Source of the DNA: Macrostomum lignano
Lineage: Eukaryota
Reading direction: 5' to 3'
DNA: 64,000 bases
Assembly (NCBI GenBank): GCA_002269645.1
Contig: NIVC01001545.1
Coordinates: 124,001 to 188,000 of the forward strand
Below the pieces are notes generated by a model, which searched no databases, was not told the origin of the DNA, and saw only the letters and a list, made by a program, of their open reading frames with translations. A program made the translations under genes and the position numbers. This document shows positions 2,745 through 63,708 of the stretch, piece after piece. How positions within the stretch are numbered: position 1 is the first letter of the stretch; every line of letters begins with the position of its first letter.

Positions 2745-3080
2745 TTAAAGCTCGGACCCCTCTAAAATGGAGCTTTTAATTTGGATCAAAAATGCATATT
2801 TTTTAGAGAGAAATGGTCTTTCAGAGGTCCAAAAATTGACGCTTTGGGCCCTTCAATTTGGACATTTTTCTAACAATTTGGACCTTAAAAAGTGGACCCT
2901 TTTTTAAAATGGACATTTGGAGGTCCAAAAATATCGACACTGCGGACCTTGCAATTTGGACCTTATTCTAACAATTTGGACCTCAAAAATGGACCTCAAA
3001 AATTGGACCTTCAGAGGTCCAAAAATATCGACGCTGCAGACCTTACAATTTGGACCTTGTGTGGACTTTTTATTGGACCT
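2745..3080. repeat. Subterminal repeat cluster (about three ~90-100 bp blocks built from ggacc/ggtcc motifs)
   Basis: gaggtccaaaaa(t)...caatttggac blocks recur near 2824, 2920 and 3014. Confidence 0.75.
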
Positions 3081-3095
3081 TTTTGCACCACAGTG

Positions 3096-4071
3096 TAGTA
3101 AGCAATTTAGTGCATTTTGTGAGTTGTACAATGTGAAGCATACTTTCACAACTCCATATCACGCTCAAAGCAATGGTTTAGTTGAGAGGTTTAACAAACA
3201 GGTCAAATCAATAATCACATGCCTGATAAAAAAGGATCACAGCAATTGGGATTTATTAATTCCAGCCGCCTTAGTTGCAGTTAGAACTAGCGTTAATCAA
3301 ACTAGAGGCTATTCGCCGCATTTCTTATTGTTTGGCAGAGAGGCAGTTTTGCCCATAGACAGCGAACGTAAAGAGCCAAATCAATATGCTAATTATCCGA
3401 CTTATGTAGCTGAGCATGCCGAAAGATTAGAGAGTGCCAGAAAAATAGTTAAAGGAAAGTTTGAGAAAGTACATGACAAGAGACAGATAGACGCTGAGAA
3501 TCAGAAGAAACCAAAGGTTATTAAAGTAGGAAGCCTAGTGTTGATTAATAATCCACAATTTAACATTGACGAGTCTAACAAGTTTCATAGGAAAAAGAGA
3601 GCCACCTTTAGGGTGCTTAAGCAAATTTCAGAAGTAGTTTTTAAGATTCAGAAAGAAGAAGGCAAGTTAGTAGGCAACAAGTTATTAGTACACAGGGATA
3701 ACATGGCCCCAGTGCCAAACTCTGTGAAAGAGCCAATAGATAAGGGAAGCCAGGAGAGCGCTGAGACAGTAGAGATTATTAATAAGGAAAGCCAGACGAA
3801 AGCTAAGCATTCAAATAAAAGAAATCAGCAGGAGGTAGGACAGTCAGGCAAGGGAAGCCACGCCAGAAAGAATAAACTAGAAGAACCAGCTATCGAATTA
3901 GAAGAAGAAAGCTCTGATGAGGAACAACCGAAGTGGTTTTGCAAGATTCGTGAAAATGAACAATCGGTACATGAGAATGAATCAGAATTGGAAGCGGAGT
4001 CAGAAGCTGGGATAGAAAATAATATGCAACATGAGAGCCTAGTGGAAGAGGAGATGGAGAGGTCAGAGTGA
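3096..4071 (+). pseudogene. Ty3/Gypsy integrase, C-terminal part of the core plus an acidic tail (5'-truncated)
   Basis: SKQFSAFCELYNVKHTFTTPYHAQSNGLVERFNKQVK...WDLLIPAALVAVRTSVNQTRGYSPHFLLFGRE is a classic rve core with the catalytic E (NGLVER). The first ~60 codons of the 2917 ORF are repeat-derived. Confidence 0.88.
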
Positions 4072-10439: not shown

Positions 10440-11168
10440 GCGGCACGGCTGGCGATGCAGAGACTTTGGAGAGCTGGACGAGTTGCAGAGGCGGATGAAG
10501 CAAAGGCGGTACTGGCGACCTCCTATACATGTAGATGGCTTAGCAAACCTAATGGGAAGAGAGGTCATCCAGTCTGTCTGGGGCACGACGCGAAACACAG
10601 GACTTGTGTGGAGCGCGGTGAGAATGAGCTCACAGGCCGCAGGCGCCGAGGCGTTTCTCAATCTAGCGGCGAGCGAGCTGACGAACGGCTGGCGGAGTTT
10701 TTTGTGAACGCTCTGGCCCCACCGCAGCTGGAAGACATCCCCGATGTGTCGCTGCCAGGATAGAGTGATTTCAACGCTTGACCTATCACCGTTTGACCGA
10801 GTTGCTAGAGGCGGTGAGCCGCTCTGCAGGAGGCAAGGCTACGGACAATATTCCCGGTGAGGCTCTGCGGATCAGGCAAGTGGCCGAAGGGGTGATGGTG
10901 AACACCATGCATGAACAGGGCTCTGGACGGAGACCCCGTTCCTGTTGAGTGGACGACCACCTACTGGTTGCGATCCCCAAAAAGCCAGGCAGCACGCGGA
11001 AGGAAGAGTACCGAGGCTTCTCCCTGACTTCCTGCGCTGCTAATAAGCTCTTCAACAAGCTGAGCCTACTGAAGCGGTTACAGCAAATGCTGGACCCATA
11101 CTAGGCTCTGGCCTGGCCACGTCGGGGCGTCGCCACCACCCAGATCCTCACCCTCCGACGTGTCATAG
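10440..11168 (+). pseudogene. Decayed RTE-like LINE ORF fragment (between endonuclease and RT)
   Basis: Frameshifted segments ELTGRRRR...ERLAEFF, GGKA..NIPGEALRI, EWTT, IPKKPGSTRKEEYRGFSLTSCAA.KLFNK and TQILTLRRVI align by eye to the LINE at 30257-34590. Confidence 0.85.
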
Positions 11169-12215
11169 TTACAATCAATCATGCTAGCTTTCTGCCATAG
11201 ACACAATCAATCATGTGGCTTGCTACCATTGACACAATCAATCATGTGGCTTGCTACCATTGACACAATCAATCATGCTAGCTTTCTGCGATAGACACAA
11301 TCAATCATGTGGCTTGCTGCCATTGACACAATCAGCCATGTGGCTTGCTGCCATTGACACAATCAGCCATGTGGCTTGCTGCCATTGACACAATCAGCCA
11401 TGTGGCTTGCTGCCATTGACACAATCAGCCATGTGGCTTGCTGCCATTTACACAATTAGTCATGAGGCTAATTGCTGCCATAGACACAATCAGTCATGTA
11501 GCTTGCTGCCATTGACACAATCAATAATGTGGCTTGCTGCCATTTACACAATCAGCCATGTGGCTTGCTGTCATTTACACAATTAGTCATGAGGCTAATT
11601 GCTGCCATTGACACAATCAATAATGTGGCTTGCTGCCATAGACACAATCAATCATGCTAGCTTTCTGCGATAGACACAATCAATCATGTGGCTTGCTGCC
11701 ATTGACACAATCAGCCATGTGGCTTGCTGCCATTTACACAATTAGTCATGAGGCTAATTGCTGCCATAGACACAATCAGTCATGTAGCTTGCTGCCATTG
11801 ACACAATCAATAATGTGGCTTGCTGCCATAGACACAATCAATCATGCTAGCTTTCTGCGATAGACACAATCAATCATGTGGCTTGCTGCCATTGACACAA
11901 TCAGCCATGTGGCTTGCTGCCATTGACACAATCAGTCATGTGGCTTGCTGCCATTGATACAATTAGTCATGTGGCTTGCTGCCATTGACACAATCAGTCA
12001 TGTGGCTTGCTGCCATTGACACAATCAGTCATGTGGCTTGCTGCCATTGATACAATTAGTCATGTGGCTTGCTGCCATTGACACAATCAGTCATGTGGCT
12101 TGTTGCCATTGACACAATTAGTCGTGAGGCTAATTGCTGCCATTGACACAATCAGTCATGTAGCTTGCTGCCATAGACACAAACTATCATGTGACTTTCT
12201 GCCATAGACACAATC
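11168..12215. repeat. 31-bp minisatellite (gacacaatcagccatgtggcttgctgccatt), ~33 variant copies with higher-order patterning
   Basis: Direct inspection. Confidence 0.92.
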
Positions 12216-13083
12216 AGTCTTGCACTCAGATTCAAATAAAAATGATATATTCCTGCACGGTCACGAGTGCACGATGTCCTTCACGCACGAGTGAACGTGA
12301 AGGAATTCCATTGTCGGATGATTCATCGTGCAGGAATGCACAAAACCGTGCAGGAATGCATTTCTGCGCCTAATGCTTTTTCAGTGAGATTTTACCATAG
12401 ACATCCATTCCTGCACGCAAAAGAGTGCAAGAATGCCATTCCTGCATGGAAAATCAGCCGACAATGAGTTGTCCCCCGTCTTACATTTTATATTACTCGA
12501 CAAAAACAAATACTTCTTAAACTCAGTTTGCTAACAAAGTTTCATCGCAACACCTACTTTAAACCTTTCAAATCGGAAGCATTAGTGCATTACATGTATA
12601 GTTGGGAGAGAGTTGTCAGCTCGCAGTGGCTTCGTAAAACACACCATATACTGATACTGATAGTTGCACTTAGACAAGCAATGTGCAAATCGATAGCTAA
12701 ATATGCATTTATCCTAACTAAGACATACAGGAAAGGGGGGCTTGAACGACGCGATTAGGATCAGTACATGTAAATCCTAATAGATTTTCACTTCTAGAGC
12801 GGGAAGAAATAAAAAAAAATAATCCAGAACATTTTTAAAATAATATACAGTAATCACGTCTACATAATAGATTCAGATTCGTCAACGAGAATTTGTTCCT
12901 TTCTGTCGGCTTCAGAAGTTCTTATTGACAGGTAAGAAGCATTTTTAGTGAGCGTGCGATTGCAGACTGTGTTAAGCATTGTTTTACTATCATGGTTCCA
13001 TTCAAACTCGCACCAGTTTTCTATCTAAGTTCAACCTTTCAACCAGAGAGTCTGAATGAAGCGATGCGACAGTTGGAGCCCAG

Positions 13084-25676: not shown

Positions 25677-26429
25677 ATGTCTCTGGGAGTCCCGCTAAGT
25701 CTGCTGGTCCTGCTACTCGCTGCTCTGCCACCGCTGAGCAACACCTCCGACTACTTCAGCCTTATCAAAGGCTACCTGTGCATCAGGAGTGAGTTCACTG
25801 AAACTGCTCCGGAGGCCGGCTCCGTGACAGCTTGCGCCATTCGATGCCATTTTAGCCCGCGCTGTCAGGCGTTCAGCCTGGCTGACGGTCCATGCCAGCT
25901 GTTCGTGTTCGACAAGTGCAGTAAGTCGGTGAGGAGCTGTGGCTGCTCCAGGAGAGGCCGGGTGTTTGTGAAGCAGCGGCCGGGACTCGAGCTGGGAGCG
26001 CTGTGTCCGTCTGGCTACGGAGACGACCTGTGCGGGGTGAAGTACAAGCTGCTCAGTGAACCGGACTTCTGGTGGCCGAGCAGACAAAAGTGCGAGTCGG
26101 AGAGCGGTCTGGTGATCATGACCGACGTGATGGACGCCACCGAGATGAGCCACGTGGAGATGATCTACAGCAAGTACAGCGCTGGATCCACGATGTGGCT
26201 TGGAGGCCACCAGTCGGCTGGCAGCACTGAGAAGCGAGGCGGCTGGTACTGGGCCAGCTGCAACATCACCCTTGACGACAGCCTGTGGAACGAGGTGGAG
26301 CCGAACGACAGTGGACTACAAGGCGAAAATGTGATCGGCCGATTTGTCCATTGGAACAAGCTGTCCGACTTCTGGGAATCGGTGGACAGATATCGAGTCC
26401 TGTGCGAGTGCGCGTCACCGTTTGTTTGA
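25677..26429 (+). CDS. Secreted PAN/Apple + C-type lectin domain protein, single exon, 250 aa
   Basis: Signal peptide; CAIRCHFSPRCQAFSLADGPCQLF (PAN-like); CTLD with W..SRQKC, MWLGG, WYW, WNEVEPND (EPN motif) and a terminal VLCEC. Confidence 0.85.
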   Translation: MSLGVPLSLLVLLLAALPPLSNTSDYFSLIKGYLCIRSEFTETAPEAGSVTACAIRCHFSPRCQAFSLADGPCQLFVFDKCSKSVRSCGCSRRGRVFVKQRPGLELGALCPSGYGDDLCGVKYKLLSEPDFWWPSRQKCESESGLVIMTDVMDATEMSHVEMIYSKYSAGSTMWLGGHQSAGSTEKRGGWYWASCNITLDDSLWNEVEPNDSGLQGENVIGRFVHWNKLSDFWESVDRYRVLCECASPFV

Positions 26430-28671: not shown

Positions 28672-30300
28672 GGTATATTGTAAATAAAAAGATAGATAGA
28701 TAGATAGATACATAGATACTAGTATAGTAACATTAGTAATACAAGATAATAGTAACATACCCCCAGATGTGTCTCGTATGAGTTGTACGATCAGGAGATC
28801 AATCACCGATTCCGTGCGCGATTGTCAGGCATAAATACGAGCCTGACAATAAGCTAGAAGCAGCCAGCTTATTTCAATTTGTCGCTAAAGCAACCGAAAA
28901 GCAAACAAAAGGAAAAGGCAATTCTTTCAGAGGGATCCTCTGGTAAAAGCCTGATTTCAAATCCCTGGTAAAAGCCTTCCTCCACCTTTCTAATTCAAGC
29001 TATTGCCCCCCTACCACCACGATAACGAGTTGAAACCAATTACCGAGAGAACAGTGTTTGATGACTTGAAGCATTGGGGTAGCTGGGAGGAATACGGAAA
29101 TACATCCCCCCCCAGTTCGGAAAAAGTTGGGATTTTTTAAGCTTTGATCTTAACAAATGATTCAAGGTTTCTAGGATTTTTCGACATAATAATGTTTCTA
29201 CGACGTATTTCGACGTATGTTTGCTCTTGACCAAGTCTTTCGGGCGCTCTTTTGAAGTCTTGAGGTTTGTTTAGGATATTTTTTGTTTTGCTTTGTATTA
29301 TTAGTATCATTTCCAGGAAGCCTGTGGGAGAACTCATACCACACGCTTTCGAATCGCCCAGGCGGATGTAGACTCACTGCGCCTTGGCCATCATAGGTGC
29401 ATGCATCGCCCGACAGCCCCCTCATAGCCATGCAAGTTTCTCACACAAAGCCCGAAATGAATGTCGTCGGCCGGAAGTGGTCGGAAGTACATCTAGTGCT
29501 TTTCGAATTTCGAACGACAAACAAAAAACTCACACTGCATGATGCATGATGCAGTTTAGATAGAAAAGCTACATTCTGCAGCATGTTCAAGCACGTCTCA
29601 ACTGTACATGTACGTGAATGGGTTGATGCAATTTTAGCCTGGCTCCAGGCCCCAGTTTAGTCTGGTGAGGAGAGTGAAGAGTTATGGCTTAAGATCATTA
29701 CTACATACCGCGTAGTTAGAGCTAAGTTTTCAGATGTTTTGACGCAAAAACGCAAATTATACTACTATCTGAAAATAAAGTAATTAGTAGTAGTATATGA
29801 AAATGCTATCCTAAGCGTGATGTATAAGCATACTTCAATATGTATATGTACTACATTAATCCCATGTATGTACATTAATCCCTATCTATCCCCAATTGTA
29901 TATGTACATTGTCTTGATGGGTTTCGACCTTCGGGCTCCTTGTTAGGGAAGCCTTCGAGCCTCAGGCTCAGAAATAAATCAATTAGAGACCTGGCCCCCC
30001 ACTCCTGTCAGATGGTCAGCCCCATGGTAGCTTGATCGTGTGGCGAGCAGTCTAGGTCCTATAGCTAAGAGAGGGACAGCGAGAGACGAGCAGGGAGAAT
30101 TTTGAAAGTAGAAATTAGCTAATCCGCAGATCAACTAACTTGCTGCCACCAGCCCGTGCGCCCTGGCTCACCACACCGGGACTCTCGAAATCGGGCTTCC
30201 GACTAGAAGGGGCTTTGCACTTACCTGCCAACTAGTGTCTTTTTGCTGTCAATCTCAACAACAACAACAAAATACGCTGTCATGATGGTAAAAGTCAGCG

Positions 30301-33300
30301 TCACAGGGCGCGCTTCATGGCTTGGGCGCGAACAAAGGCCGCGCCACCGGCAGTCAGCCAGCAGACAGTCGACATAACGCCGAGTTCGCGCTTGACCTCG
30401 ACGGTAGGGTGCCTGCAGCGTGAGCAGCAGCACCTCCTGCACCGGCTGTGGGCAGTACGACTCGGCGCGGATGAGATGGCCTGCGAGCTGGAGTCGCCGA
30501 CGGCGCAGTAGATCACTTGGACGTGGCAGGCCAGCGCGGCGATAGAGTGCCGCGTTGGTGACTCGCTCGACGCCGATGTTGAAGGCGGCGCGCAGCAGAC
30601 CAGCGTGCGCCGCATCGACTTGCTGTTCGAGTGAGTCCGTCAGCGTCCAGGTCTCGGCGTTGTACAGCAGGACGGTCTCGATTACCGCCTGGAACAGCGC
30701 CGCCCTCTGGCGGTCCGGTAGGGCCTCGGACTGCAGGACTGCCCTCACAGAACGAAAGGCAGCCCAGGCAAGCCCGCGGCGGCGTCGCAGGTCCTCGCGA
30801 GCGTCTGGAACCAGACCGCCGAGGTAGACGAACTGCTGACATCGCGGGAGTTCGGTCGCCTGCCCGTCAGCGCCTCGGCAAAATATTGCAGCCTCGATGT
30901 CGTCCGGCACGCAGAGCACAACGGTCTTCTGCGTGTTGACCACCAGGCCGACACTCGCCGCAACGGCAACCAGCCTGTCCAGCTGCCGTTGGGCGCCCTC
31001 GACGGTCGAGGACAGCAGGGCGAGGTCGTCGGCGTAGCCAAGCACGCTGAGCCGCTTCTCCGGTTGACGTCGACCCACGCGTCGCTGCAGCAGAAAACCG
31101 TCGTCGTCGGTAGGAAGAGCAGTCCGCAGCACCCAGTCAAGCACCAGGACGAACAGAAACGGCGCCAGCGTATCTCCCTGAAGCACTCCGGAGGATGTCT
31201 CAAAGGAGTCCGATAGGCCGTCCGGTGTTGTCACAGCAGCTGTCGTATCACGGTACATCGCCATGACGGCGGAGATCAGCTGCTCAGGCACGTTGTACGC
31301 GCGGAGCACCATTGGAAGCACGGCTCTGACAACCGAGTCGAATGCCTTCTTGAAATCAATAAAGATTAAAATCAGTATCGACTGACGAATCCGCGCCTCC
31401 TCGATGACTCGGCGAAGAGCCAGGATCTGCGCCACTGTGCCGCGATGGGGCCGGAACCCGTTCTGCTCTGGGCGCAGGTACGGATCCAGCACGGGCTGCA
31501 ACCGCGAAAGCAGCATCCGGTTGAACAGCTTCGCTGCACAGGACTGAAGGCAGATGCCTCGATGGTCTTCAAGCCTAGTGGTGCCCGGCTTCTTTGGAAC
31601 AGCGACGATGTGCGCCGTGGTCCATTCGTTGGGCGCCGCCTCACCGAAGAGCACGCGGTTCATCACTCTGGCGACCTCAGCGGCCACACAGGGGATGCGC
31701 AGCGCCTCGATGGGCACCTCGTCCGGACCCAGCGCTTTCCCGCCCGGTGACTGCTGGGCGAGCTTGACAACGTCGGCTGCGTTGACTGGGGCTACGCTGA
31801 AACTCTCCTCTGCCGGCAGCGGCGTCTCCGGCGGCAGCGTCAGACTGTCTGGCAGCGGGGGTGGCGGCGCGTTGACGATGGCGGCGAAGAACTCGCGCAG
31901 CTCGTTCCTACGCTCGTCCGGCGTGTCACCAGCCAGGTTCAGCGGATTGCGCCGCTTTCGTCCCGTCAGAGCGTTGATGGCGGACCAGGCCACGCGCCCT
32001 CTGGCATCGGGCCCAGCGGCAGAGACAGCCTGAATGGCGTCATCGACAGCCGCTTGTTGGCGCTGCAGGTAGACAGCTGCCAGAGCTGCCTCTGCCTCGC
32101 GGGTTGGTCGCCTGCTCAAGCGGAGCTTCTCCAGATCTTCCCTCGCTGCCTGAATCGCGGGGTCGTCCTGCCAGACCGGCTGCCCACGTTGAGCCGGCTG
32201 CATCATCGGGACTGCTTGCTCCGCGGCGGTTCTGATTGCAGCGCACACTTCCGCATACTCGGCACTTCCACGCTTGTCGCCCAGCGCGGTGTTAAAGGCG
32301 CTAGCAAAGCGACGCTGCGTATCGGTGGCTCTGAGCGCGCGGTAGTAGCGCCGCGGTGGCCGCTTCGGCGGACGGTAGAGCGGATCGCGAAGGTTGAGGT
32401 CGCAGATGAGGAGCCGGTGATCGGACCGCAGAGCCAGCGGCGTGATGGTGCGGCAGTTGACGGCGCGACGACGCTCACGGAAACGCACGAGCACGTGGTC
32501 GAGCTGTGCTTGTCTCCGGGTTGCGTTCCTGCCACGCGCGTTCCGTCGCCTCCGCTTGCAGCCCACGAAGGTTGCGAGACCGCTCAGTGGCTTGCGGAAG
32601 CGGGTGTTGGCCGACACCATGTCCTGCCTCTCCAGGAAGTCCTCTAGTGCCTCGGTGTTGTTGTTCCCGCGTGGCGTCACGAACAGCGACCTCTCGGACC
32701 TACGCAGGACTGCGTTCAGGTCTCCGAGGGCGACCGCTGTGTCACGCTGCGCCGTCGCCTCTACCTGCACTGAGAGCTGCTCGAAAAACTCTTGAGCCTC
32801 GTCAGGGCGTGTGGCAGGGGGCGCGTACGCGCAGAACAGGCGAGCATTCCGACCGCGTAGCCGGACGTCGATCCGAAGCAACCGGGGGACAGGGAGATGC
32901 AGCGACAGCTCTGCTGCAGCCTCGGCCCGATCAGCGCTCCAACTCCTCCACGGCCTCGCTGGTCCGCAGAAGTATAGTAGAGGGTCCACCCGGCGCCCAA
33001 GTCCTCACAATGAAGTCCCGGGTCGGCCTTGATAGACACCTCCTGCAGCGAGATGATGTCGCAGCTCAGGTCGTACGCCAGCTTCGCCAGCACCCCTCTA
33101 CGCCAAGCAGCCTTGAGAGTGCGGCAGTTCAGCGTCCCGACCCGAAGCATGCCCTGTGGTACGGCTGGGGCTCGATGCAGTTGAGCCTCACGGTCCCCGG
33201 CGCCACCCGGAGGATCCGAGTGGACCCGCGCGGCAGCTCGACGGGCGGCGCCACGCAGCCGGCCTCGTCGGTTCCGCTCACGCCGGCGCTCAACACGCCG

Positions 33301-33396
33301 ACGGGCGCTCCGCTGCCCTCGCTTGGTCCTGCCGCATTTGGCCGCCGCAGCAGTTAAGCGCGGCTCTCCGCTCTGACCACGAGGAGGTAGCGGCAT
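30301..33396 (-). pseudogene. LINE APE endonuclease + reverse transcriptase ORF, frameshifted near 32885
   Basis: LRVGTLNCRTL...LQEV, AYAP, LGDLNA, LDHVLV, SDH (APE); FRPHRG, FIDFKKAFDSV, GVLQGDTLAPFLF, YADDLALL (RT). The 211-aa and 922-aa ORFs join by a 1-nt indel. The C-terminal end is uncertain. Confidence 0.92.
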
Positions 33397-33411
33397 TTAT
33401 CTGCACCATGG

Positions 33412-34586
33412 TGCAAATAAATTAAGACTGCAAATAAATTAAGACTGCAAATAAATTAAGACTGCAAATAAATTAAGACTGCAAATAAATTAAGACTGCA
33501 AATAAATTAAGACTGCAAATAAATTAAGACTGCAAATAAATTAAGACTGCAAATAAATTAAGACTGCAAATAAATTAAGACTGCAAATAAATTAAGACTG
33601 CAAATAAATTAAGACTGCAAATAAATTAAGACTGCAAATAAATTAAGACTGCAAATAAATTAAGACTGCAAATAAATTAAGACTGCAAATAAATTAAGAC
33701 TGCAAATAAATTAAGACTGCAAATAAATTAAGACTGCAAATAAATTAAGACTGCAAATAAATTAAGACTGCAAATAAATTAAGACTGCAAATAAATTAAG
33801 ACTGCAAATAAATTAAGACTGCAAATAAATTAAGACTGCAAATAAATTAAGACTGCAAATAAATTAAGACTGCAAATAAATTAAGACTGCAAATAAATTA
33901 AGACTGCAAATAAATTAAGACTGCAAATAAATTAAGACTGCAAATAAATTAAGACTGCAAATAAATTAAGACTGCAAATAAATTAAGACTGCAAATAAAT
34001 TAAGACTGCAAATAAATTAAGACTGCAAATAAATTAAGACTGCAAATAAATTAAGACTGCAAATAAATTAAGACTGCAAATAAATTAAGACTGCAAATAA
34101 ATTAAGACTGCAAATAAATTAAGACTGCAAATAAATTAAGACTGCAAATAAATTAAGACTGCAAATAAATTAAGACTGCAAATAAATTAAGACTGCAAAT
34201 AAATTAAGACTGCAAATAAATTAAGACTGCAAATAAATTAAGACTGCAAATAAATTAAGACTGCAAATAAATTAAGACTGCAAATAAATTAAGACTGCAA
34301 ATAAATTAAGACTGCAAATAAATTAAGACTGCAAATAAATTAAGACTGCAAATAAATTAAGACTGCAAATAAATTAAGACTGCAAATAAATTAAGACTGC
34401 AAATAAATTAAGACTGCAAATAAATTAAGACTGCAAATAAATTAAGACTGCAAATAAATTAAGACTGCAAATAAATTAAGACTGCAAATAAATTAAGACT
34501 GCAAATAAATTAAGACTGCAAATAAATTAAGACTGCAAATAAATTAAGACTGCAAATAAATTAAGAGACTGCAAATAAATTAAGAC
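33412..34586. repeat. Homogeneous array of 69 x 17 bp (tgcaaataaattaagac) at the LINE 5' end
   Basis: 1175 bp equals 68 units of 17 bp plus one 19-bp variant near 34563. Confidence 0.95.
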
Positions 34587-36339
34587 TCGATCAATCTCGA
34601 AGTCATAGCCGATGATAAGGGACACTGCTGGGACTAGATCGCGTTGGCCATGCAGGTACAGAGGGGACTTGTGCAGGGGATTCTTGCAGTGGCGAGACTA
34701 TGGGGTAGCTACATGTACTATTACATTGCTAAATACGAAGATATGTACTTTTAGCCTTCAACGCGCCAACTAGCCTCTCATAGCGCTGATGATAGGCTAA
34801 CTCGAACTTCAGAGACCGCATGATTCATTTACCCGAGCCGCTTGGCTACCCTAGAGTGCACAAAGTACATCTCTGGCGCCGATTCTGCACTTTTGGCAGT
34901 TTTGCTCACTGATTTGCTAGATTGGTCGACTGAGAACTGCCTTGCCATTGGTCCACTGTAACCGGCGCCTACTAGCTTAGCTACTCATCTGAGCCATCGG
35001 CGAACAAAGAAATAAAGCCGACAAAGATAACTGTTAGATTTAACCTTCTCCTTAGTTCACTTCACACTTTAGATTGAATTGGAGTCTTAGACTACTAGCA
35101 GTATTATTGAATGATTCCTGCCTCAGCAACAGCACTACTGAACAAAATGAGCAAAAGTGTGCGCCTAATTCAGCTACTGCAACAGGGGACAGAAAAGGGA
35201 TCACCCAATCAAGCAAGTCTAGGTAGCCTCTCACCCAACCAATCAGAAACTCAACAGCCGGAGACCAGGTATTCCACAGTGACCGAATCGGCTCGATGCT
35301 CTGCAGCTGTAGACTCGGGATGATGCTGTCACAATCTTCGCTGTTAGCTAGCAGGTGATGCTCTTAACTGGATGTTCGCTGCTGTCGACCGGGGGACTCG
35401 TCCTTGATGATGATGGGGGAAGTTGCAATCCGGGGATCAAGAAACGACGGTCGTGCTCCGGGAACCAGAAGTTGCGCGCTGGGCCCGAGCCAAAGTAAGT
35501 AGAAGTTGCGTCCGAGCGGGCCAAAAACTCCGGTTTAAATAGCCGCCAACTGGACCGCAGTTTGTTATAACGGAACACGTCGATTCTGATTGGCTGAGCC
35601 GTTTTGTTAAAATGAGCGCCGAATTTTCTGATTGGCTAAGCTCGTTGCTAACCAGAATCACGTGACCGAGAGATCCTATCAGTTCCCACAGGGTCGTAAA
35701 AAGATGACAGGTGCGGCCATAAATCACTCAAAATCGCAACAAAATGATTTATGACTTTTCGCGTAGGATTGACAGAAATTAATGAAAAAATATACATTAG
35801 AAAGCTCTTATTTAATAGAAAGTGAAGATAATGAAGAGAAATCGCTAATCGCTAATCCCAATGTACTTTTAGGGGTAAAACGCATAGCTGTCAAAGCTGT
35901 CACATGCTTGAGTGAATCCGAACAATAGGCTCTGACCTCATAAATCTTGATGGCCTGTCAAAATGATGAGAAAAAAGCTACCGCCCGCATCCTCTCAGAC
36001 CATCTGGCGCCCGCTTCAACACTGAGTGAGGCGCAGGTGGCTGTCAGATCAGCTTCGAAAGCGATGATTTATGACCCAAAAAGCTGCGCCTATGTTATTA
36101 TGACTACTAGTATGGCCAGACATTATATCTAGTATAGATTCTATGAAAATTCGCAGAAAAAGGATAAAAATGCCCACTGCCCACTGTTAGTAGGCAAGTA
36201 AGTTTAAGTTTAAAGCTGAACATATAAATATAGGTACTGTTCGCTAACTAATCACTTGAGCCGAACGACTTAATCGAAAGATTACGTAAAATTTTCCCTA
36301 ATTAAAAGATTGTCCACATCAGTCCCTCCCTTGGTCTTC

Positions 36340-38986: not shown

Positions 38987-39481
38987 TCAACAAAATGGGA
39001 GCATTTGCCCCAATACTAATAGATTTCTAGTGTGGTAATCCAACACAGCAGGTGCTGCTGCGAGGAAAGAGTTGCCCAACAGAGGCCTCGTGCCGGGGTC
39101 ACTGGCAATCAGGAACATGACAGGCATGGTCTCACTGCCTAAGATGACTGTCAGCTTAGATTGACCCACAATCTCCAGTCTATGCCCGCTATAGGAATAG
39201 ATAGAAACTGTAGGGGGCTCCAACCTGTCCATATCATCGTTAGTGGCCGCCACGAAGTCTTTGAAGGGTAAGATGGAAACTGCCGACCCAGAATCGATTA
39301 AGATTCGGACTGGCAATCTCTCTACTTGAACTTTTACATAAACATCAGCTCGAGAGCTTCTAAATGTTACAGACTTCCTAGGGACAATGAAATCGGGTAC
39401 AAGATTCATTTTCCTTTTGCCACTGTTTACTAAATTTGCCCTTAAAAGTCCAGAAGAGGGGTGAGTGCGGGCGCCACCCAT
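38987..39481 (-). CDS. Retroviral-type aspartic protease ORF, in the -1 frame relative to gag
   Basis: VRILIDSGSAVSIL and PLLGNSFL motifs. It ends in a stop with no RT following. Confidence 0.9.
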   Translation of the reverse strand: MGGARTHPSSGLLRANLVNSGKRKMNLVPDFIVPRKSVTFRSSRADVYVKVQVERLPVRILIDSGSAVSILPFKDFVAATNDDMDRLEPPTVSIYSYSGHRLEIVGQSKLTVILGSETMPVMFLIASDPGTRPLLGNSFLAAAPAVLDYHTRNLLVLGQMLPFC

Positions 39482-39489
39482 CCCTACTC

Positions 39490-40847
39490 TCAGTTTTCCG
39501 AACCGGCTGGCCCAGACGGAAGATAGAAAGAGGGCCGCTGTCTCTGCGCTCCAGGCGCCGGGGTTGGCGGGGGGCTCCAGCTTTCTTCTCCTACTCTGCT
39601 CTCTCCCTGGGTAGGAACACGCAGGGGAGGCGGGCGCGCGCGTGCACTGTTGCGCAACTGCGGGGGCCGGTAAATCTCAGTTTTTTCAATCTGCTTGGCC
39701 GGGTCACCATAAATCGCATTCTGCCTCTGTAGCGCGGGCTTCTCTGACAGATTTTGAGATGAGGGGGGCGGGGACTTGCCCTCAGGCGGTTGGCTAGCTC
39801 GCTCAGTATCTTCTACCACTGTGAGGTCTCCCTCACAATGATCTGAGTGGCTTATCATGGCCCGATCGATCTTCTCCGCTACCTGACTCATAGCGCCGTA
39901 AATCTTGCCGACGGTTTCATCAAGGCTGTTTTGGCGCTGCTGTAAATCTGTCAATGCCTCTTCTACTTCCCTTCCTTCCTCCGACCCTAGCATGCGGACC
40001 CACCTGCGTTGATATTCTCTGTCGCTGGGGCGATTCTGATCTCTGTTTCTATCGTCCCTACGCTGATCATACCTGGGCTGGTCTCGCGCTAAGCGCCGGG
40101 AAATCTCATCTGCCTCTTGGAGATTCTGCTGTGCTGCCAGCACTTCATCAATGCTGCGAAACTGTTGCCCTAGCAGCGACTTGCGCACATCTGGGGCGAT
40201 GTCAGCTGTTTCCAAGTAGGCAAAGATCACCTCCGACTCTAACTGTCTAGGACTCATGTCGGGGTAAGCAGAAGCTATCACACTACGCACCATGGCCGAA
40301 TAGGCGTGGTGATTCTGGCCTGCTTTCTGTTTCAAATTCCGGACTTTGTTCCTCTTCGCTAATTCTGAACTGGCCTCTCCTACCTGGCGACCTAACCTTT
40401 CTATGAATTCTTCGAAGTCAAGGCCGGGATGGAGGGCAATAGCAAGACTCTGCAGATCTGGGGGGAGGAGCGAGATTACTGTGCTCTTCTTCTGCTCTCT
40501 GTCCCTAATCTCTTCAGATCTGAGTTTGTATTTGACTCTGTCAACCCACTGGGGAAGCAGGATTCTGCTGGGTTGAATTTCTCAACGCTAATCTTGACAC
40601 TCTGTGTCTCTCTGCCCAATCCAATAGCTGCAAGGGCTTGCGCTAATTGGGCTGCCATGTCGGCGGCTTGGGGTTGAGGTGGGGCTCTCTGCGGTGATGA
40701 TCCGCACTCTGATCTCTCGGGGGAGCCTGAGCCCTGGGACGAAAAATCGCAGGCGGCTGCGGCGGCGGCTGCTGATCCGTTCCTATTTCCTCTACCTCTT
40801 CTGCCTCTACCTCCTGACTTACTGGTACTGGAATTACATGTTTCCAT
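39490..40847 (-). pseudogene. gag (capsid-like) with one frameshift near 40550
   Basis: The 123-aa ORF (…ISVEKFNPAESCFP) joins the 281-aa frame through EWVDRVKYKL...LLPPDLQSLA...FEEFIERL. Confidence 0.8.
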
Positions 40848-52219: not shown

Positions 52220-55200
52220 ATGCACGGGGATCAGGCCTCATCATCATCTGGCGGTCGCAAAGGACGCTTGGATCACAATGTGCTAGCTTATTACAGAGAA
52301 ACTCTGCGCAATCTCGACGAGATGCGCTCACCTAGTTGGGGAAATCCGGACGATTATGGTGAGATCAATATGAGTAGACTCAATTATTCCTAAGTTTGGA
52401 GATTTGGAATTTTTACTGAGATTAGCTAGATATGGATTATCCACTCGCCGACTTCCAACAGAGCAGCTTCTGAGCACGGCATTTGATAGCCTGGCCAGGG
52501 AGGGCCGCCAGCTGGCTCAGAACCAGACTGGCTCTCGGCTTGCCGAGTCCCTCATCAATCTGGCCGACTGGCCCCGGCTGGCCCGCCTGCTCAACAACTT
52601 CGCCGCCAACTGGCCTGCAGTTGTTGGCGACAGGTTTGCCCACCGGGTGCTGCAAACCGCTATTAGGCGGTACCTGACGCTGCGGCTTGAAGGTTTGTGA
52701 GCTTTTAACTGAGCTGTCAACCTTCTGGATTCTCAAATGAGTGGCATTTGACAGTTTCCCAGATCCTCAGTTGCTGGGCCAGCCTTCCAGATCCTCAGTT
52801 GCTGGGCCAGCCCTCCAGATCCTCAGTTGCTGGGCCATCAGCCTTCCAGATCCTCAGTTGCTGGGCCATCAGCCTCCCAGATCCTCAGTTGCTGGGCCAG
52901 CCTTCCAGATCCTCAGTTGCTGGGCCACCAGCCTCCCAGATCCTCCTTTGCTGGGCCAGCCTCCCAGATCCTCCGTTGCTGGGCCAGCCTTCCAGATCCT
53001 CAGTTGCTAGGCCATCAGCCTCCCAGATCCTCAGTTGCTGGGCCACCAGCCTCCCAGATCCTTAGTTGCTGGGCCACCAGCCTCCCAGATCCTCCTTTGC
53101 TGGGCCAGCCTTCCAGATCCTCAGTTGCTGGGCCATCAGCCTCCCAGATCCTCAGTTGCTGGGCCAGCCTCCCAGATCCTCAGTTGCTGGGCCAGCCTCC
53201 CAGATCCTCAGTTTCTGGGCCAGCCTCCCAGATCCTCAGTTGCTGGGCCAGCCTCCCAGATCCTCCGTTGCTGGGCAAACAGTCTCCCAGATCCTCAGTT
53301 GCTGGGCCAGCACCGCCGTCTCCAGATCCCCGGTCGGGATCCAAAGTTGAACAGAGCCCCAACCAAACAACCAAAAATCCCCAGGCAGGGGTGAAGCGGA
53401 CGCCGCCGGCAGCGCAGACGATGACGGAGCAGTGGACGGCGAGCCGTTATCAGTCGAGTCCGACCCGAGCCGGCTGTGGGGAACCTTCGCTGCTCACATG
53501 CGCCTGCACTACCCCGAGTACCTGGAGCACCCCTACGCTTGTCACACTCTGCGCAGCTACCTGCTGCTTATTGGTGGGGTGCTGGTCTCTGCCAACCCCA
53601 CTGCACCATCTGGCTCTTCGTTTAACAAGCACGGTGTGTGTGTGACTCATGTAGCTCTTTGTTGTAGGAAGGTTGTTGTAAAAACAAGTGTCCATTGCGT
53701 AGGCAATAGGTATGGTGTAATCGTGTAGAGATGGCTGGGGACTGGGGTGTATCAGGATAGAAATGGGGTAGGGTGTGATGGGGTAGATAAATGGGTAGGG
53801 TGTGATGGGGTAGATAAATGGGTAGGGTGTGATGGGGTAGATAAATGGGTAGGGTGTGATGGGGTAGATAAATGGGTAGGGTGTGATGGGGTAGATAAGT
53901 GGGTAGGGTGTAAAGGCGTAGATAAATGGGTAGGGTGTGATGGGGTAGATAAATGGGTAGGGTGTAAAGGGGTAGATAAATGGGTAGGGTGTGATGGGGT
54001 AGATAAATGGGTAGGGTGTAAAGGGGTAGATAAATGGGTAGGGTGTGATGGGGTAGATAAATGGGTAGGGTGTGATGGGGTAGAGAAATGGGTAGGGTGT
54101 GATGGGGTAGATAAATGGGTAGGGTGTGATGGGGTAGATAAATGGGTAGGGTGTGATGGGGTAGATAAATGGGTAGGGTGTAAAGGGGTAGATAAATGGG
54201 TAGGGTGTGATGGGGTAGAGAAATGGGTAGGGTGTGATGGGGTAGATAAATGGGTAGGGTGTGATGGGGTAGATAAATGGGTAGGGTGTAAAGGGGTAGA
54301 TAAATGGGTAGGGTGTGATGGGGTAGATAAATGGGTAGGGTGTGATGGGGTAGAGAAATGGGTAGGGTGTGATGGGGTAGATAAATGGGTAGGGTGTGAT
54401 GGGGTAGATAAATGGGTAGGGTGTGATGGGGTAGATAAATGGGTAGGGTGTAAAGGGGTAGATAAATGGGTAGGGTGTGATGGGGTAGATAAATGGGTAG
54501 GGTGTGATGGGGTAGAGAAATGGGTAGGGTGTGATGGGGTAGATAAATGGGTAGGGTGTGATGGGGTAGATAAATGGGTAGGGTGTGATGGGGTAGATAA
54601 ATGGGTAGGGTGTAAAGGGGTAGATAAATGGGTAGGGTGTGATGGGGTAGAGAAATGGGTAGGGTGTGATGGGGTAGATAAATGGGTAGGGTGTGATGGG
54701 GTAGATAAATGGGTAGGGTGTGATGGGGTAGATAAATGGGTAGGGTGTGATGGGGTAGATAAATGGGTAGGGTGTGATGGGGTAGAGAAATGGGTAGGGT
54801 GTGATGGGGTAGATAAATGGGTAGGGTGTGATGGGGTAGATAAATGGGTAGGGTGTGATGGGGTAGATAAATGGGTAGGGTGTAAAGGGGTAGATAAATG
54901 GGTAGGGTGTGATGGGGTAGAGAAATGGGTAGGGTGTGATGGGGTAGAGAAATGGGTAGGGTGGTTCAAATGCGGGTAACCACAGAAAACTGACAATAGT
55001 ATGAATAGATTCCGATTTCACCTGCCATATCAATAAGCTGCTAATCCGCCCGCATCATTGCAGACTCCTACGATCCCAGCAGTTCCGTTCTGGTCGATCC
55101 GCCTCTTGAATTCGATGGCATTTCGCTCACTGAAGAATTGGATGGCTTGTGCTCACGGTTCCTGGAGAACAAGCACGTTCTGTGTGAGTTGCGGGGGTTG

Positions 55201-58200
55201 AGGCTTGTTGGTTCATAAATTGCCAAGTCATGCCGTGATATGATCTTTCAATATTGGGTCATTGACCCTCTGAAGTGAGTCATGAGTTTTTAATGGATCA
55301 TTGATTTTTTGAAGTGAGTAATTAATGGATCATTGATTCTCTGAAGTGAGTCATTAATGGGTCATTTATTCTCTGAAGTGAGTCATTAATGGGTCATTTA
55401 TTCTCTAAAGTGAGTCATTAATGGGTCATTGATTCTCTGAAGTGAGTCATTAATGGGTCATTTATTCTCTGAAGTGAGTCATTAATGGGTCATTTATTCT
55501 CTAAAGTGAGTCATTAATGGGTCATTGATTCTCTGAAGTGAGTCATTAATGGGTCATTGATTCTCTGAAGTGAGTCATTAATGGGTCATTTATTCTCTGA
55601 AGTGAGTCATTAATGGGTCACTGATTCTCTGAAGTGAGTCATTAATGGGTTATTCAAATTTCGACATAACTGCAAGTCATAAGCTTGATAGTATGTACAT
55701 CAGTACATGTTAAAGTTGTGACGTAATAAATATAATATTAATATTGTAGCAAGACAGCAATACAATATAGCAATACAATGGTTTTGTTATAAATCGCTCA
55801 TCTGCCAGTGATCACCTGTTCATCAACATTCCAGCCCTGATTGACAGCGAAGTGACGGGTCCTTTTCTTCAGGTGCTCATGCTGGTGCTGAAGCTGCGGT
55901 TGCCAAAGCGATTTAGAAAATTTATTAAGCACCTGAATAAGGCGTCCGGACTCCTTGATGCCACCTGCAAGATAGAGGCATTGGGGGAGAAGTACAGGTG
56001 AGTGTGTTTTGTGAGATTTTGAGATGTCTGAGCTTTTGTGAGATTTCAAAAAACTACAGGTGTGAGATTTTGAATCAAATAAGCTACAGGTGTGAGATTT
56101 TGAATCAAATAAACTGCAGGTGTGAGATTTTGAATCAAATAAACTACAGGTGTGAGATTTTGAATCAAATAAACTACAGGTGTGAGATTTTGAATCAAAT
56201 AAACTATAGGTGTGAGATTTTGAATCAAATAAACTACAGGTGTGAGATTTTGAATCACATAAACTACAGGTGTGAGATTTTAAATCAAATAAACTACTGG
56301 TGTGAGATTTTGAATCAAATAAACTACAGGTGTGAGATTTTAAATCAAATAAACTACAGGTGTGAGATTTTGAATCAAATAAACTACAGGTGTGAGATTT
56401 TAAATCAAATAAACTACAGGTGTGAGATTTTGAATCAAATAAACTACTGGTGTGAGATTTTGAATCAAATAAACTACAGGTGTGAGATTTTAAATCAAAT
56501 AAACTACAGGTGTGAGATTTTGAATCAAATAAACTACTGGTGTGAGATTTTAAATCAAATAAACTACAGGTGTGAGATTTTGAATCAAATAAACTACAGG
56601 TGTGAGATTTTGAATCAAATAAACTACAGGTGTGAGATTTTGAATCAAATAAACTACAGGTGTGAGATTTTGAATCAAATAAACTACAGGTGTGAGATTT
56701 TGAATCAAATAAACTACAGGTGTGAGATTTTGAATCAAATAAACTACAGGTGTGAGATTTTAAATCAAATAAACTACAGGTGTGAGATTTTGAATCAAAT
56801 AAACTAAAGGTGTGAGATTTTAAATCAAATAAACTACAGGTGTAAGATTTTGAATCACATAAACTACAGGTGTGAGATTTTGAATCAAATAAACTACAGG
56901 TGTGAGATTTTGAGATGGCTAAGCTTTTGTGAGATTTGTGAGATTTTGAATCAAATAAGCTACAGGTGTGAGATTTTGAATCAAATAAACTACAGGTGTG
57001 AGATTTTGAATCAAATAAACTACAGGTGTGAGATTTTGAATCAAATAAACTACTGGTGTGAGATTTTGAATCAAATAAACTACAGGTGTGAGATTTTGAA
57101 TCAAATAAACTACAGGTGTGAGATTTTGAATCAAATAAACTACAGGTGTGAGATTTTGAATCAAATAAACTACTGGTGTGAGATTTTAAATCAAATAAAC
57201 TACAGGTGTGAGATTTTGAATCAAATGAGCTACAAAGAGATTTTGGTTTCAAACAAATTTCCCCAAATGCTCAATGCTTTCCCATGCCCGCAGCGTCCCC
57301 TCCCTGCTGTGCAGCAGCACCGGCTGCTACTTCCTGGAGCAGCTGGTTTCTCTGCTCTCACCGAAGCAGCTCCGCAAATTCGCCTCCGCCCACATCGCCG
57401 GCAAGGAGGCTGCGCTGGCCCTGCATCCCAGCGCCAATTTCGTCCTGCAGCGCCTGGCGACAGCGGACCCTCCGCCTGGCGACTGGCTTGCCAAGCTGGT
57501 GGCCTCGGCAGTTGGCGACTCGCCCGGTGCCGGCTGGCTGTCCGAGGCGATGCGGCAGTCGCCTGGCAGACAGCAGCAGCTGCTGGTAGGGTCTCCGCTT
57601 TCAATTCCTGTTCATGCGCATCACGTGACTCAACACTCCATTATTCAAGCAGACTAAATTGAGTTGTTATAAATGCTAAATGCGATTCTAATTCATAAAC
57701 TGACGCAGAGTCGTAGACAGTCAAACGCCTCAAATATTGATTCTTTGACGGCTTTTGCAGGCGACTTGTACCGTGATATCTTGTTTTTGGGTCGTCTAAG
57801 AGTCCCTTCTTTCCTATTTTACCTGTGTTACCTGCAGTGACTCCTAGGTGACTCAAGTGATTCTTGGACGCCTCTTGGCCTGGGTGCAGTTTTCATCGGG
57901 TGAGACAATTCTGCTCATTCCCCTGGCTCCTGAGCACATGCTGCGCCAATGCTGTGCGCACGCATACACACGCTCACACAGGGTGTACATGTACAGCGGC
58001 CTGACTTTCGGTCTGAGAGTCAGGCGCCCCCCCCCTGACTATCGCTGCCCCTTCAACACCCCTTCAAAATCACTCAGTATTCTCTGGGCAAAGTGCTTTG
58101 CATCGAATGGGATTTAACTACCGGAGACAATATTTGAGATTAGAAATTAGAATCAATTATAGCCTAGGTTGTAGCCTAGTGAGGGGTTGTAGCCTAATGG

Positions 58201-62166: not shown

Positions 62167-63708
62167 ATGAGCCATTCTCGGTGCCCATCCTACGTTCATG
62201 AGGTGTGTGTCACCTGCAATATTAGTATGCTCGGTGGACTAAAGCACCATGTAGCGAATGAAGGCTGCAGTGTCACCTGATGGCTACTATGCCATGAATG
62301 CCAGTCCGTTGAGCTCTTCACCGTTAGAGGCCAAATCAAAAGGCATAAAAATCATTCGACTGTTAATTGGAGCTCTGCTGAAGACCGCGAGCAGGCACGC
62401 ATTACTGCTCTGGAAGTTGCACGTCAAGAGGAACGCAACAGGGCGGCAGAACGCATTCGAGAGCCGGTGAGCACTTTGAGTCAAGTTATCACAAGCTTAT
62501 GCGGCCGAGTAACGAACACTGGTGACCAGCCCAACGCCCAGCCTGCTGCTGCTTCTGCTGCTCTACTCGACGGTGATGTCGGAGCTCCCCTGCTTGATGC
62601 TGCTGATGGAGGTGGCACCCCTGACTTCGAGCTGAATGTGCTGGACACCGCTTTCTTCGAGAACCTCGATGGTGAGCCTGAAGCACAGGAGCAGCAAGAA
62701 ATGCAACAGCAGCAGCAGCGGCGTGCAATCCCTGTTCCCGGAAAAAATATGGAGCGTGCCAGGATGCTGGCAGAAGTCAGCCTGTCCGACATGATTCGCG
62801 ATATGGACTCGGGCCCTGCGCCTCCACCACCGCCACCACCGACTGAGGTTCAGCCTGCGGTCGAAGTCAGCCTGTCCGACGTGATTCGCGATATGGACTC
62901 GGGCCCTGCGCCTCCACCACCGCCACCACCGACTGAGGTTCAGCCTGCGGTCGAAGTCAGCCTGTCCGACGTGATTCGCGATATGGACTCGGGCCCTGCG
63001 CCTCCACCACCGCCACCACCGACTGAGGTTCAGCCTGCGGTCGAAGTCAGCCTGTCCGACGTGATTCGCGATATGGACTCGGGCCCTGCGCCTCCACCAC
63101 CGCCACCACCGACTGAGGTTCAGCCTGCGGTCGAAGTCAGCCTGTCCGACGTGATTCGCGATATGGACTCGGGCCCTGCGCCTCCACCACCGCCACCACC
63201 GACTGAGGTTCAGCCTGCGGTCGAAGTCAGCCTGTCCGACGTGATTCGCGATATGGACTCGGGCCCTGCGCCTCCACCACCGCCACCACCGACTGAGGTT
63301 CAGCCTGCGGTCGAAGTCAGCCTGTCCGACGTGATTCGCGATATGGACTCGGGCCCTGCGCCTCCACCACCGCCACCACCGACTGAGGTTCAGCCTGCGG
63401 TCGAAGTCAGCCTGTCCGACGTGATTCGCGATATGGACTCGGGCCCTGCGCCTCCACCACCGCCACCACCGACTGAGGTTCAGCCTGCGGTCGAAGTCAG
63501 CCTGTCCGACGTGATTCGCGATATGGACTCGGGCCCTGCGCCTCCACCACCGCCACCACCGACTGAGGTTCAGCCTGCGGCCGCTAATGAAGTGCAGCAG
63601 CCAGCACCTCTCTGCATCCAGCTGGTTCTGCCCAACAGTGTTACGGGTGAATATTGGATTGACTTGGGAGGGGCTTTCCGTATTCGCCTGAGCAATTCTC
63701 AATTCTAA
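62167..63708 (+). pseudogene. Cys/His (zinc-finger-like) N-terminus plus 9 x 90-bp poly-proline repeat protein; one in-frame TGA at 62278
   Basis: ATG 62167 is in frame with the 413-aa ORF: MSHSRCPSYVHEVCVTCNISMLGGLKHHVANEGCSVT*WLLCHECQSVELFTVRGQIKRHKNH... followed by (VSLSDVIRDMDSGPAPPPPPPPTEVQPAVE) x 9. Confidence 0.6.

Follow-up and report, generated by a model that had tools for sequence, protein, structure and literature searches.

In a stretch of 64,000 nucleotides of the Macrostomum lignano genome (contig NIVC01001545.1, positions 124,001 to 188,000, Mlig_3_7 assembly, GCA_002269645.1; hereafter the window, in which coordinate w corresponds to contig coordinate 124000 + w), we identified a full-length but frameshifted RTE-like long interspersed nuclear element (LINE) whose 5' end is made of tandem copies of a 17-bp unit. 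By comparing this element with its relatives, we came to favor, with moderate confidence, the explanation that it begins with a miniature array of 5' monomers, in which the element's own first 17 nt are reiterated and coupled to a hairpin at the start codon, the array having grown by slippage and carrying initiator-like sequences at its joints. An earlier note made from the sequence alone (hereafter the original prediction) had connected the array with the spliced leader (SL) of M. lignano, and this connection is weighed below. The features of the element are listed here with their window coordinates; sense refers to the coding strand of the LINE, and its single long open reading frame is abbreviated as ORF.

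33412..34587, minus strand: array of 69 units; the sense unit GTCTTAATTTATTTGCA consists of a 6-nt leading segment (GTCTTA) and 11 nt of the hairpin 5' arm.
33395..33422, minus strand: 5' hairpin in the sense RNA, AUUUAUUUGCAC / loop CAUG / GUGCAGAUAAAU, 12 bp including one U-G pair.
33394..33396, minus strand: ORF start codon, within the hairpin 3' arm; the N-terminus MP(L/P/R)PP is kept in the related loci L009, L010 and L011.
34591..34598: target-site duplication, 5' copy, separated from the first unit by 4 nt.
34588..34590, minus strand: extra bases TCG (sense), which follow the target-site duplication; an A separates them from the first unit.
30249..30256: target-site duplication, 3' copy, TCAATCTC on the plus strand and GAGATTGA on the element sense strand, directly after the (TTG)n tail; the identical 8-mer lies at 34591-34598.
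30301..33396, minus strand: single LINE ORF of about 1,030 codons, with an endonuclease followed by a reverse transcriptase.
32390..33150 (approximate limits), minus strand: apurinic/apyrimidinic-type (APE) endonuclease domain, 59-72% identity to homologues bearing PF03372.
30818..31597, minus strand: reverse transcriptase domain (Pfam RVT_1, E 6e-28).
30273..30300, minus strand: short 3' untranslated region (UTR) of 28 nt after the ancestral TGA stop (30303-30301), placed by alignment with the related locus L005.
30257..30272, minus strand: 3' microsatellite tail, (TTG)n on the sense strand.

The array was recovered by Tandem Repeats Finder at 33412-34587 (period 17, 69.1 copies, 99% matches, score 2334), and a pattern search for the unit gave 69 matches against 0.37 expected by chance, in agreement with the 69 copies described in the original prediction, a figure that is the count in the assembly. 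It is composed of 67 perfect 17-mers and one 19-mer, GTCTCTTAATTTATTTGCA on the sense strand, which is the second unit from the element 5' end and is obtained from the 17-mer by a simple duplication of CT; variation is thus confined to a single unit at the array edge. Each unit joint reads TTGCAG|TC on the sense strand, and the insertion starts at a unit boundary, its 5' junction being ...TCG-A-GTCTTAA. At the opposite end of the array, the last unit, which forms the hairpin and is identical to the other units, runs into CAC beside the hairpin loop instead of CAG|T. Among the longer arrays of the window (>10 copies), this array is the most homogeneous, with 99% unit identity.

An 8-bp target-site duplication, TCAATCTC at 30249-30256 and 34591-34598, encloses both the LINE ORF and the array, and the probability that all 8 positions would agree by chance at these fixed junctions is roughly 1e-4. 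The earlier claim that the array belongs to the element and not to its flank is therefore upheld by the duplication and, in addition, by homologous arrays at the same position in four related loci (L008, L003, L011 and L010). A mis-assembly might nevertheless have affected the length of the array or the point where it joins the LINE, as tandem arrays are error-prone and the assembly contains a second contig that is 96-98% identical to this one. We regard such an artefact as highly improbable: for Mlig_3_7, PacBio reads were assembled by Canu, followed by polishing with Pilon (PMC5730564), and the array of 1.2 kb is well within the read length, so it is not a short-read artefact; the perfect target-site duplication spans the whole structure; and the same architecture is present in relatives from independent short-read assemblies.

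In a protein search, members of the family were detected among UniRef entries of M. lignano (56-89% identity) and in 3-4-kb contigs of the ENA, JGI and Logan assemblies, and 13 loci were retrieved for comparison. Loci of group 1 (L001, L004, L006, L012, L013) have a long 5' UTR and a different N-terminus; neither a 17-bp array nor a start-codon hairpin was found in any of the five. Loci of group 2 (L002, L003, L008, L009, L010, L011) share the 5' architecture of the window element. Two 5' modules can be distinguished accordingly, namely a short hairpin end with a basic N-terminus and a 5' UTR of 150-700 nt with an N-terminus of the form YSR..LL..RR.LW. Their occurrence on similar endonuclease and reverse transcriptase bodies suggests that 5' modules have been swapped between elements of the family. 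The units of the window element and of the group 2 loci are as follows.

Window: GTCTTAATTTATTTGCA, 17 bp, 69 copies.
L008: GTCTTAGCATATTTTCA, 17 bp, at least 8.5 copies, all perfect; the contig begins in the array, and the hairpin and ATG follow.
L003: GTGCCATGATATTTTCA, 17 bp, at least 1.8 copies; the contig begins in the array.
L011: GTGTTGGCTATTTTCA, 16 bp, at least 1.9 copies; the contig begins in the array.
L010: GAAGTAATATATTTGCA, 17 bp, about 2 copies, diverged.
L009: GTTCCTATATATTTGCA, 17 bp, 1 copy; the contig extends to unique flank.
L002: GAGCCACTTTATTTATA, 17 bp, 1 copy; the contig extends to unique flank.

The units of the seven elements can be aligned with each other, and their first G is invariant (7/7). 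In the copies with a single unit, homology ends at that same G, which places the start of the repeated segment at the terminal nucleotide of the element. Units are identical within one element and differ between elements. The joints in L008, L003 and L011 read TTTCAG|T, and here too the last unit runs into CAC. Thus, as in an array of 5' monomers, tandem units stand at the 5' end inside the target-site duplication of the window element, and their number varies between elements from 1 to 69. These observations support the view that the array is a trait of the element and its relatives, as judged from their sequences. Antisense to the LINE, every unit of the window array contains AATAAA, giving 69 polyadenylation-signal-like hexamers on the plus strand (33412-34587); a functional role of this hexamer was rejected, as it is not kept in the L008 unit.

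The second component of the 5' end is the hairpin around the start codon, which in the window has a minimum free energy of -13 kcal/mol (z -3.7). The unit holds 11 of the 12 nt of its 5' arm, ending one base short of the stem apex, and the 3' arm holds the ATG of the ORF. All seven elements (the window element and L002, L003, L008, L009, L010 and L011) fold into hairpins of 11-15 bp (z -3.3 to -4.4), and in the six relatives the 3' arm contains or abuts the ATG, directly upstream of the MP(L/P/R)PP start. The seven elements were aligned by structure over 12 pairs, with every sequence anchored on its own hairpin. In this alignment, 92.9% of cells form pairs, and compensatory double changes are observed in 5 of the 12 pairs; the covariation score was reached by none of 500 shuffles, and pairing dropped to 30-55% in slid registers. 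G-U wobbles account for 11 paired cells, and in five of the seven elements the fold of the sense strand has the greater stability (sum of -98.8 vs -79.5 kcal/mol for the antisense strand), which indicates that the structure belongs to the sense RNA of the LINE. On this predicted folding, a probable role of the hairpin is to control either the start of translation or the way in which the protein of the element recognizes the RNA. Self-priming of the cDNA by fold-back was considered as another role and is disfavored, because the G-U wobbles make the antisense fold worse.

The apex of the window hairpin coincides with the palindrome TGCACCATGGTGCA at 33402-33415. The original prediction had located this palindrome correctly, together with the ATG of CCATGG at 13 nt from the ORF ATG (33396-33394), and had considered CCATGG a strong initiation context. 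The latter function was rejected: CCATGG makes up the loop of the hairpin, its ATG does not share the frame of the ORF, and none of the six relatives has it, so that it is specific to this copy. The loop ATG (33407-33409, minus strand) opens an upstream ORF of 39 codons that overlaps the main ORF out of frame and is not conserved in the relatives; a 43-aa overlapping first ORF was reported for RTE-1 of Caenorhabditis elegans (PMC1291365). A self-cleaving ribozyme of the hepatitis delta virus (HDV)-like type was likewise tried as a candidate and rejected. The sub-threshold match to the RTE-associated ribozyme drz-agam-1 at 33332-33405 (minus strand) reaches 28.8 bits, the gathering score being 37, forms only 2 of the 7 P1 pairs and has no counterpart in 11 related loci, and no family reached its gathering score in an Rfam scan of the whole window. 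The match is centered on ACCUCCUCGUGGU, which also encodes the N-terminal Pro-Pro-Arg-Gly.

The identity of units within an element, the identity of the last unit to the others and the location of the boundary at the RNA terminus suggest that the array has been regenerated repeatedly, with the 5'-terminal unit as its source. In the mechanism that we propose, as soon as two units are present in an RNA, the growing cDNA could anneal anew with its 3' end shifted downstream by one unit, and the terminal unit would then be copied a second time, which would make the slippage at the 5' end a counterpart of the slippage presumed to generate the (TTG)n tail at the 3' end. Alternatively, the array could grow when a replicating strand re-anneals one unit out of register, and host replication slippage may add units in a minisatellite-rich genome. 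Each joint, a T-rich stretch followed by CA|GT, is initiator-like, so that transcription could start at any of them, and a start at any joint would keep at least one unit and the hairpin for the next copy. Initiator motifs at position +1 are typical for internal promoters of non-LTR (long terminal repeat) elements (PMC2861651). It is plausible that the units act as a promoter or in translation.

Several observations weigh against this explanation. The three relatives that reach unique flank hold only 1-2 units, which implies that a long array is not needed for a full-length copy; the comparison of copy numbers involves one M. lignano copy and relatives from other assemblies; and the structural alignment, given the way it was built, favors structure. 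Furthermore, about 30 distinct tandem arrays (50 Tandem Repeats Finder rows) are present in the 64-kb window, and simple and tandem repeats make up 15% of the M. lignano genome (PMC5730564). With tandem arrays so unusually abundant in this genome, a large part of the expansion to 69 units could be post-insertional, in place and functionless.

The last point leads to an alternative in which the element was inserted with one or a few units that were later expanded to 69 by replication slippage or unequal exchange, with no function attached. In addition to the abundance of tandem arrays, locally and genome-wide, it is favored by the position of the sole variant unit at the array edge, as in homogenised arrays, and by the fact that the window copy is already disabled by frameshifts. 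However, three or more further elements from unrelated datasets have arrays of homologous units at this position, the unit boundary falls precisely on the terminal nucleotide of the element, which points to an event at the RNA end, and the unit identity is the highest among the window arrays of more than 10 copies. We therefore consider an expansion purely in place rather unlikely, and retain the regeneration of 5' monomers as the favored explanation.

The SL sequence quoted in the original prediction agrees with the published M. lignano leader, CGGTCTCTTACTGCGAAGACTCAATTTATTGCATG (PMC8629364), the last 43 nt of which are identical in M. cliftonense and M. hystrix (PMC10468722, supplementary table). 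In the best local alignment, CTTAATTTATTTGCA of the unit is matched to CTCAATTTA-TTGCA of the leader, i.e. 13-14 of 17 positions with a gap. The gapped local score was equaled by 1.0-1.4% of composition-matched shuffles and by 1.5% of AT-rich 17-mers of the window, the best ungapped match (13/17) by 0.15% of shuffles, and the score of the 17-mer in an alignment with one long gap by 0.35-1.3% of controls. The claimed resemblance therefore stands insofar as the unit is closer to the leader than 98.6-99.85% of shuffles (p about 0.0015-0.014) and 98.5% of AT-rich 17-mers, in a comparison chosen after the fact; it fails insofar as the match is imperfect and gapped and the units of the relatives are unlike the Macrostomum leader, the one with which they were compared (p 0.15-0.99). 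The 19-mer, previously proposed to echo the leader, indeed matches it at 18 of 19 positions with a 13-nt skip (about 0.05% or less of controls as good), although only a CT duplication separates it from the 17-mer.

These matches, together with the length of the leader segment after its internal AG (17 nt, counted on the published sequence, which is the length of the unit), might indicate that the units are derived from the SL as a relic or mimic of its 3' part, acquired through template jumps onto SL RNA or through repeated trans-splicing and retrotransposition, as in dinoflagellate retrogenes. Several lines of evidence make such an origin very unlikely. The match is imperfect in spite of the youth of the array (67 identical units), so that the units are not near-exact copies of the leader, and no full leader heads the array. 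Neither a full nor a partial exact leader was found at the 5' junction, which consists of the target-site duplication, TCGA and the unit, and a search of the whole window for the leader with up to 3 mismatches revealed no match and no SL RNA gene. Repeated template jumps onto SL RNA, as suggested in the original prediction, would give exact leader copies of 35-45 nt and are not supported, as no such copy is present at the 5' junction or elsewhere in the window. Finally, segments of the unit are shared with one or another relative (GTCTTA with L008, TTTATTT with L002, TTTGCA with L009 and L010), and the positions that match the leader are those constrained by pairing with the start-codon region. 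Since each segment is found in relatives that are not leader-like, descent within the family can explain the unit sequence without leader capture; this argument is not airtight. The resemblance to the leader is thus most likely an inherited coincidence, as far as the compared sequences can tell.

Another link with trans-splicing concerns the joints. About 30% of M. lignano genes are trans-spliced, and the leading motif at the trans-splice acceptors is [T/C]TNCAG (PMC8629364), which is matched by TTGCAG in the window array and by TTTCAG in L008, L003 and L011, the last unit of the window array beside the hairpin loop carrying CAC in place of CAG. It can be speculated that the joints serve as acceptors to which the host SL is added, so that read-through RNA would be freed from upstream sequence, capped and made translatable, in a role similar to that of HDV-like ribozymes at the 5' ends of other LINEs. 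However, a trans-spliced template would bring a leader of 35-45 nt, whereas the single complete 5' junction is TCGA followed by a unit and the leader is absent from the window. In addition, CAG arises automatically from the CA at the unit end, which is part of the stem, and the invariant first G, and the same joint hexamer doubles as an initiator-like site. Because the insertion begins at a unit boundary without a leader, the initiator function of the joints is favored over the acceptor function, and the latter appears unlikely. Taken together, a tie between the array and SL trans-splicing, either through 69 TTGCAG joints that would be working acceptors or through a unit that would be an old relic or mimic of the 17 nt after the internal AG of the leader, is on the whole improbable.

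Without the array, the LINE spans 3,155 bp on the minus strand (33411 to 30257). A Pfam search of the window copy gave no direct domain match for the endonuclease stretch itself; the domain was assigned through the N-terminal half, which is 59-72% identical to homologues with Exo_endo_phos (PF03372). At the amino acid level, the ORF is 57-90% identical to the homologues P0001-P0032. Two frameshifts, on which the original prediction is silent, were found. The first is the loss of one C from a C run inside the endonuclease (plus strand, 32884-32888), which could be a residual long-read error; the second is a 17-nt deletion at 30354/30355 relative to L005, a 90%-identical relative, which removes the stop, so that the frame enters the flank. 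As in the RTE clade, a single long ORF encodes an N-terminal APE endonuclease followed by a reverse transcriptase, and the size, the 28-nt 3' UTR and the (TTG)n tail correspond to the 3.2-3.9 kb and the very short 3' UTR of 3-5-nt repeats described for this clade (PMC1291365). The RTE-like label accordingly refers to domain order, size and tail. The (TTG)n tail is also present in L001, L002, L003, L005, L009 and L011, and L008 ends in (ATT)9 at 3365-3391 instead, indicating that the tail repeat changes between lineages.

With regard to the distribution of the family, an exact pattern of the unit dimer had no match in collections of viral contigs or contigs of prokaryotic genomes, and protein-guided scans for the family likewise yielded nothing in these two collections. 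A protein-guided scan of metagenome contigs found only two loci, one belonging to the other 5' subfamily and one 5'-truncated. Close relatives with up to 90% amino acid identity are L001, from a Tara Oceans contig, and L005, L006 and L007, from JGI metagenomes. These metagenome relatives imply either macrostomid-like animals in the samples or a wider host range of the family.

The duplicate contig mentioned above, NIVC01003024.1, is 96-98% identical to the contig of the window in GCA_002269645.1, in a comparison that ends about 3.3 kb short of the LINE; no record was found for the ORF at 25677-26429, which lies nearer to the element. NIVC01001545.1 itself agrees with the window at 100% identity over 22.4 kb. 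Both duplicates (L014, L015) carry an intronless gene for a 795-aa SID1-like channel (PF13965; 13084-15477, minus strand), the nearest other M. lignano homologue of which is only 36% identical, and L014 has an extra 1,318-aa gene call that is absent on the contig of the window. A second, diverged reverse transcriptase fragment of the LINE family lies at 10796-11167 on the plus strand (45-54% amino acid identity) and ends 4 bp before a satellite of 33 copies of a 31-bp unit (11171-12219), which is also present in three blocks of the duplicate contig L014. Remnants of LTR retrotransposons were found at 2917-4071 (plus strand) and 38987-40335 (minus strand), comprising an integrase-like ORF (weak rve_3 and Integrase_p58_C matches) and an ORF resembling a gag-aspartyl protease. 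Large minisatellites at 53761-54963, 56046-57234 and 62773-63580 contain 44.5 copies of 27 bp (with an extreme G skew), 39.5 copies of 30 bp and 9 copies of 90 bp, respectively; the 90-bp repeat keeps the reading frame and codes for a protein of proline-rich repeats.

A 5' UTR is nearly lacking in RTE-type LINEs, and their transcription and the maintenance of their 5' ends are poorly understood. The sublineage described here displays two coupled devices at this end, a conserved hairpin around the start codon and a reiteration of the first 17 nt. If the units do act as a promoter, they would represent the smallest LINE monomer known, and the solution used by mouse L1 would have arisen independently in invertebrate RTE-like elements. 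If the joints were trans-splice acceptors, they would provide a new mode of 5'-end formation in retrotransposons, and any link of the array to the SL, whether as acceptors or as a relic or mimic, would amount to a so far undescribed definition of the 5' end in a trans-splicing animal. The array also illustrates one route by which minisatellites originate in a genome of which 15% consists of simple and tandem repeats. Transgenesis and datasets of 5' ends and SL reads are available for M. lignano, so that these readings are directly testable.

The nearest known systems are elements of the RTE clade, such as C. elegans RTE-1 and the schistosome elements SR2, SR3 and SjR2, which share with the window LINE a size of about 3.2 kb, a single ORF (about 1,000 aa) that encodes an APE endonuclease at the N-terminus and a reverse transcriptase, a very short 3' UTR that ends in a trimer repeat, and a target-site duplication; they differ in that neither a 5' tandem array nor a start-codon hairpin is described for them in PMC1291365. 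With the HDV-like ribozymes at LINE 5' ends (drz-Agam, R2, L1Tc), the window element has in common a 5'-end device that would define the RNA terminus, but the ribozyme match itself was rejected, as described above. SLACS, CZAR and NeSL-1 are LINEs with a restriction-like endonuclease that insert into SL RNA genes, and SLACS has 5' repeats; the window LINE, in contrast, encodes an endonuclease of the APE type and lies at a target site other than an SL gene. The 5' monomers of mouse L1 (A, Tf, Gf) are arranged head-to-tail in variable number, are carried along by retrotransposition and act as a promoter; they are about 200 bp long and occur in 2-10 or so copies. The head-to-tail arrangement and the variable number of 5' repeats are shared with the element described here, in which, however, the unit is 17 bp long, is present in up to 69 copies and doubles as a hairpin arm, and a promoter role is proposed by analogy. 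Dinoflagellate retrogenes carry tandem, near-exact truncated leader units headed by a full leader. They resemble the window element in their short tandem 5' units, in the trans-splicing organism and in a unit length equal to the leader segment after the internal AG, whereas the window units match the leader at 13-14 of 17 positions with gaps, are headed by no full leader and are homologous to units that are not leader-like. Leader remnants at retrogene 5' ends are mentioned in PMC12014239. Finally, the Drosophila elements jockey, I factor and Doc and the rotifer element Hebe start at an initiator-like CA|GT or CATT, and a full-length copy keeps the promoter (PMC2861651); in these elements a single initiator is located at +1, while in the window array the motif is repeated at every joint.

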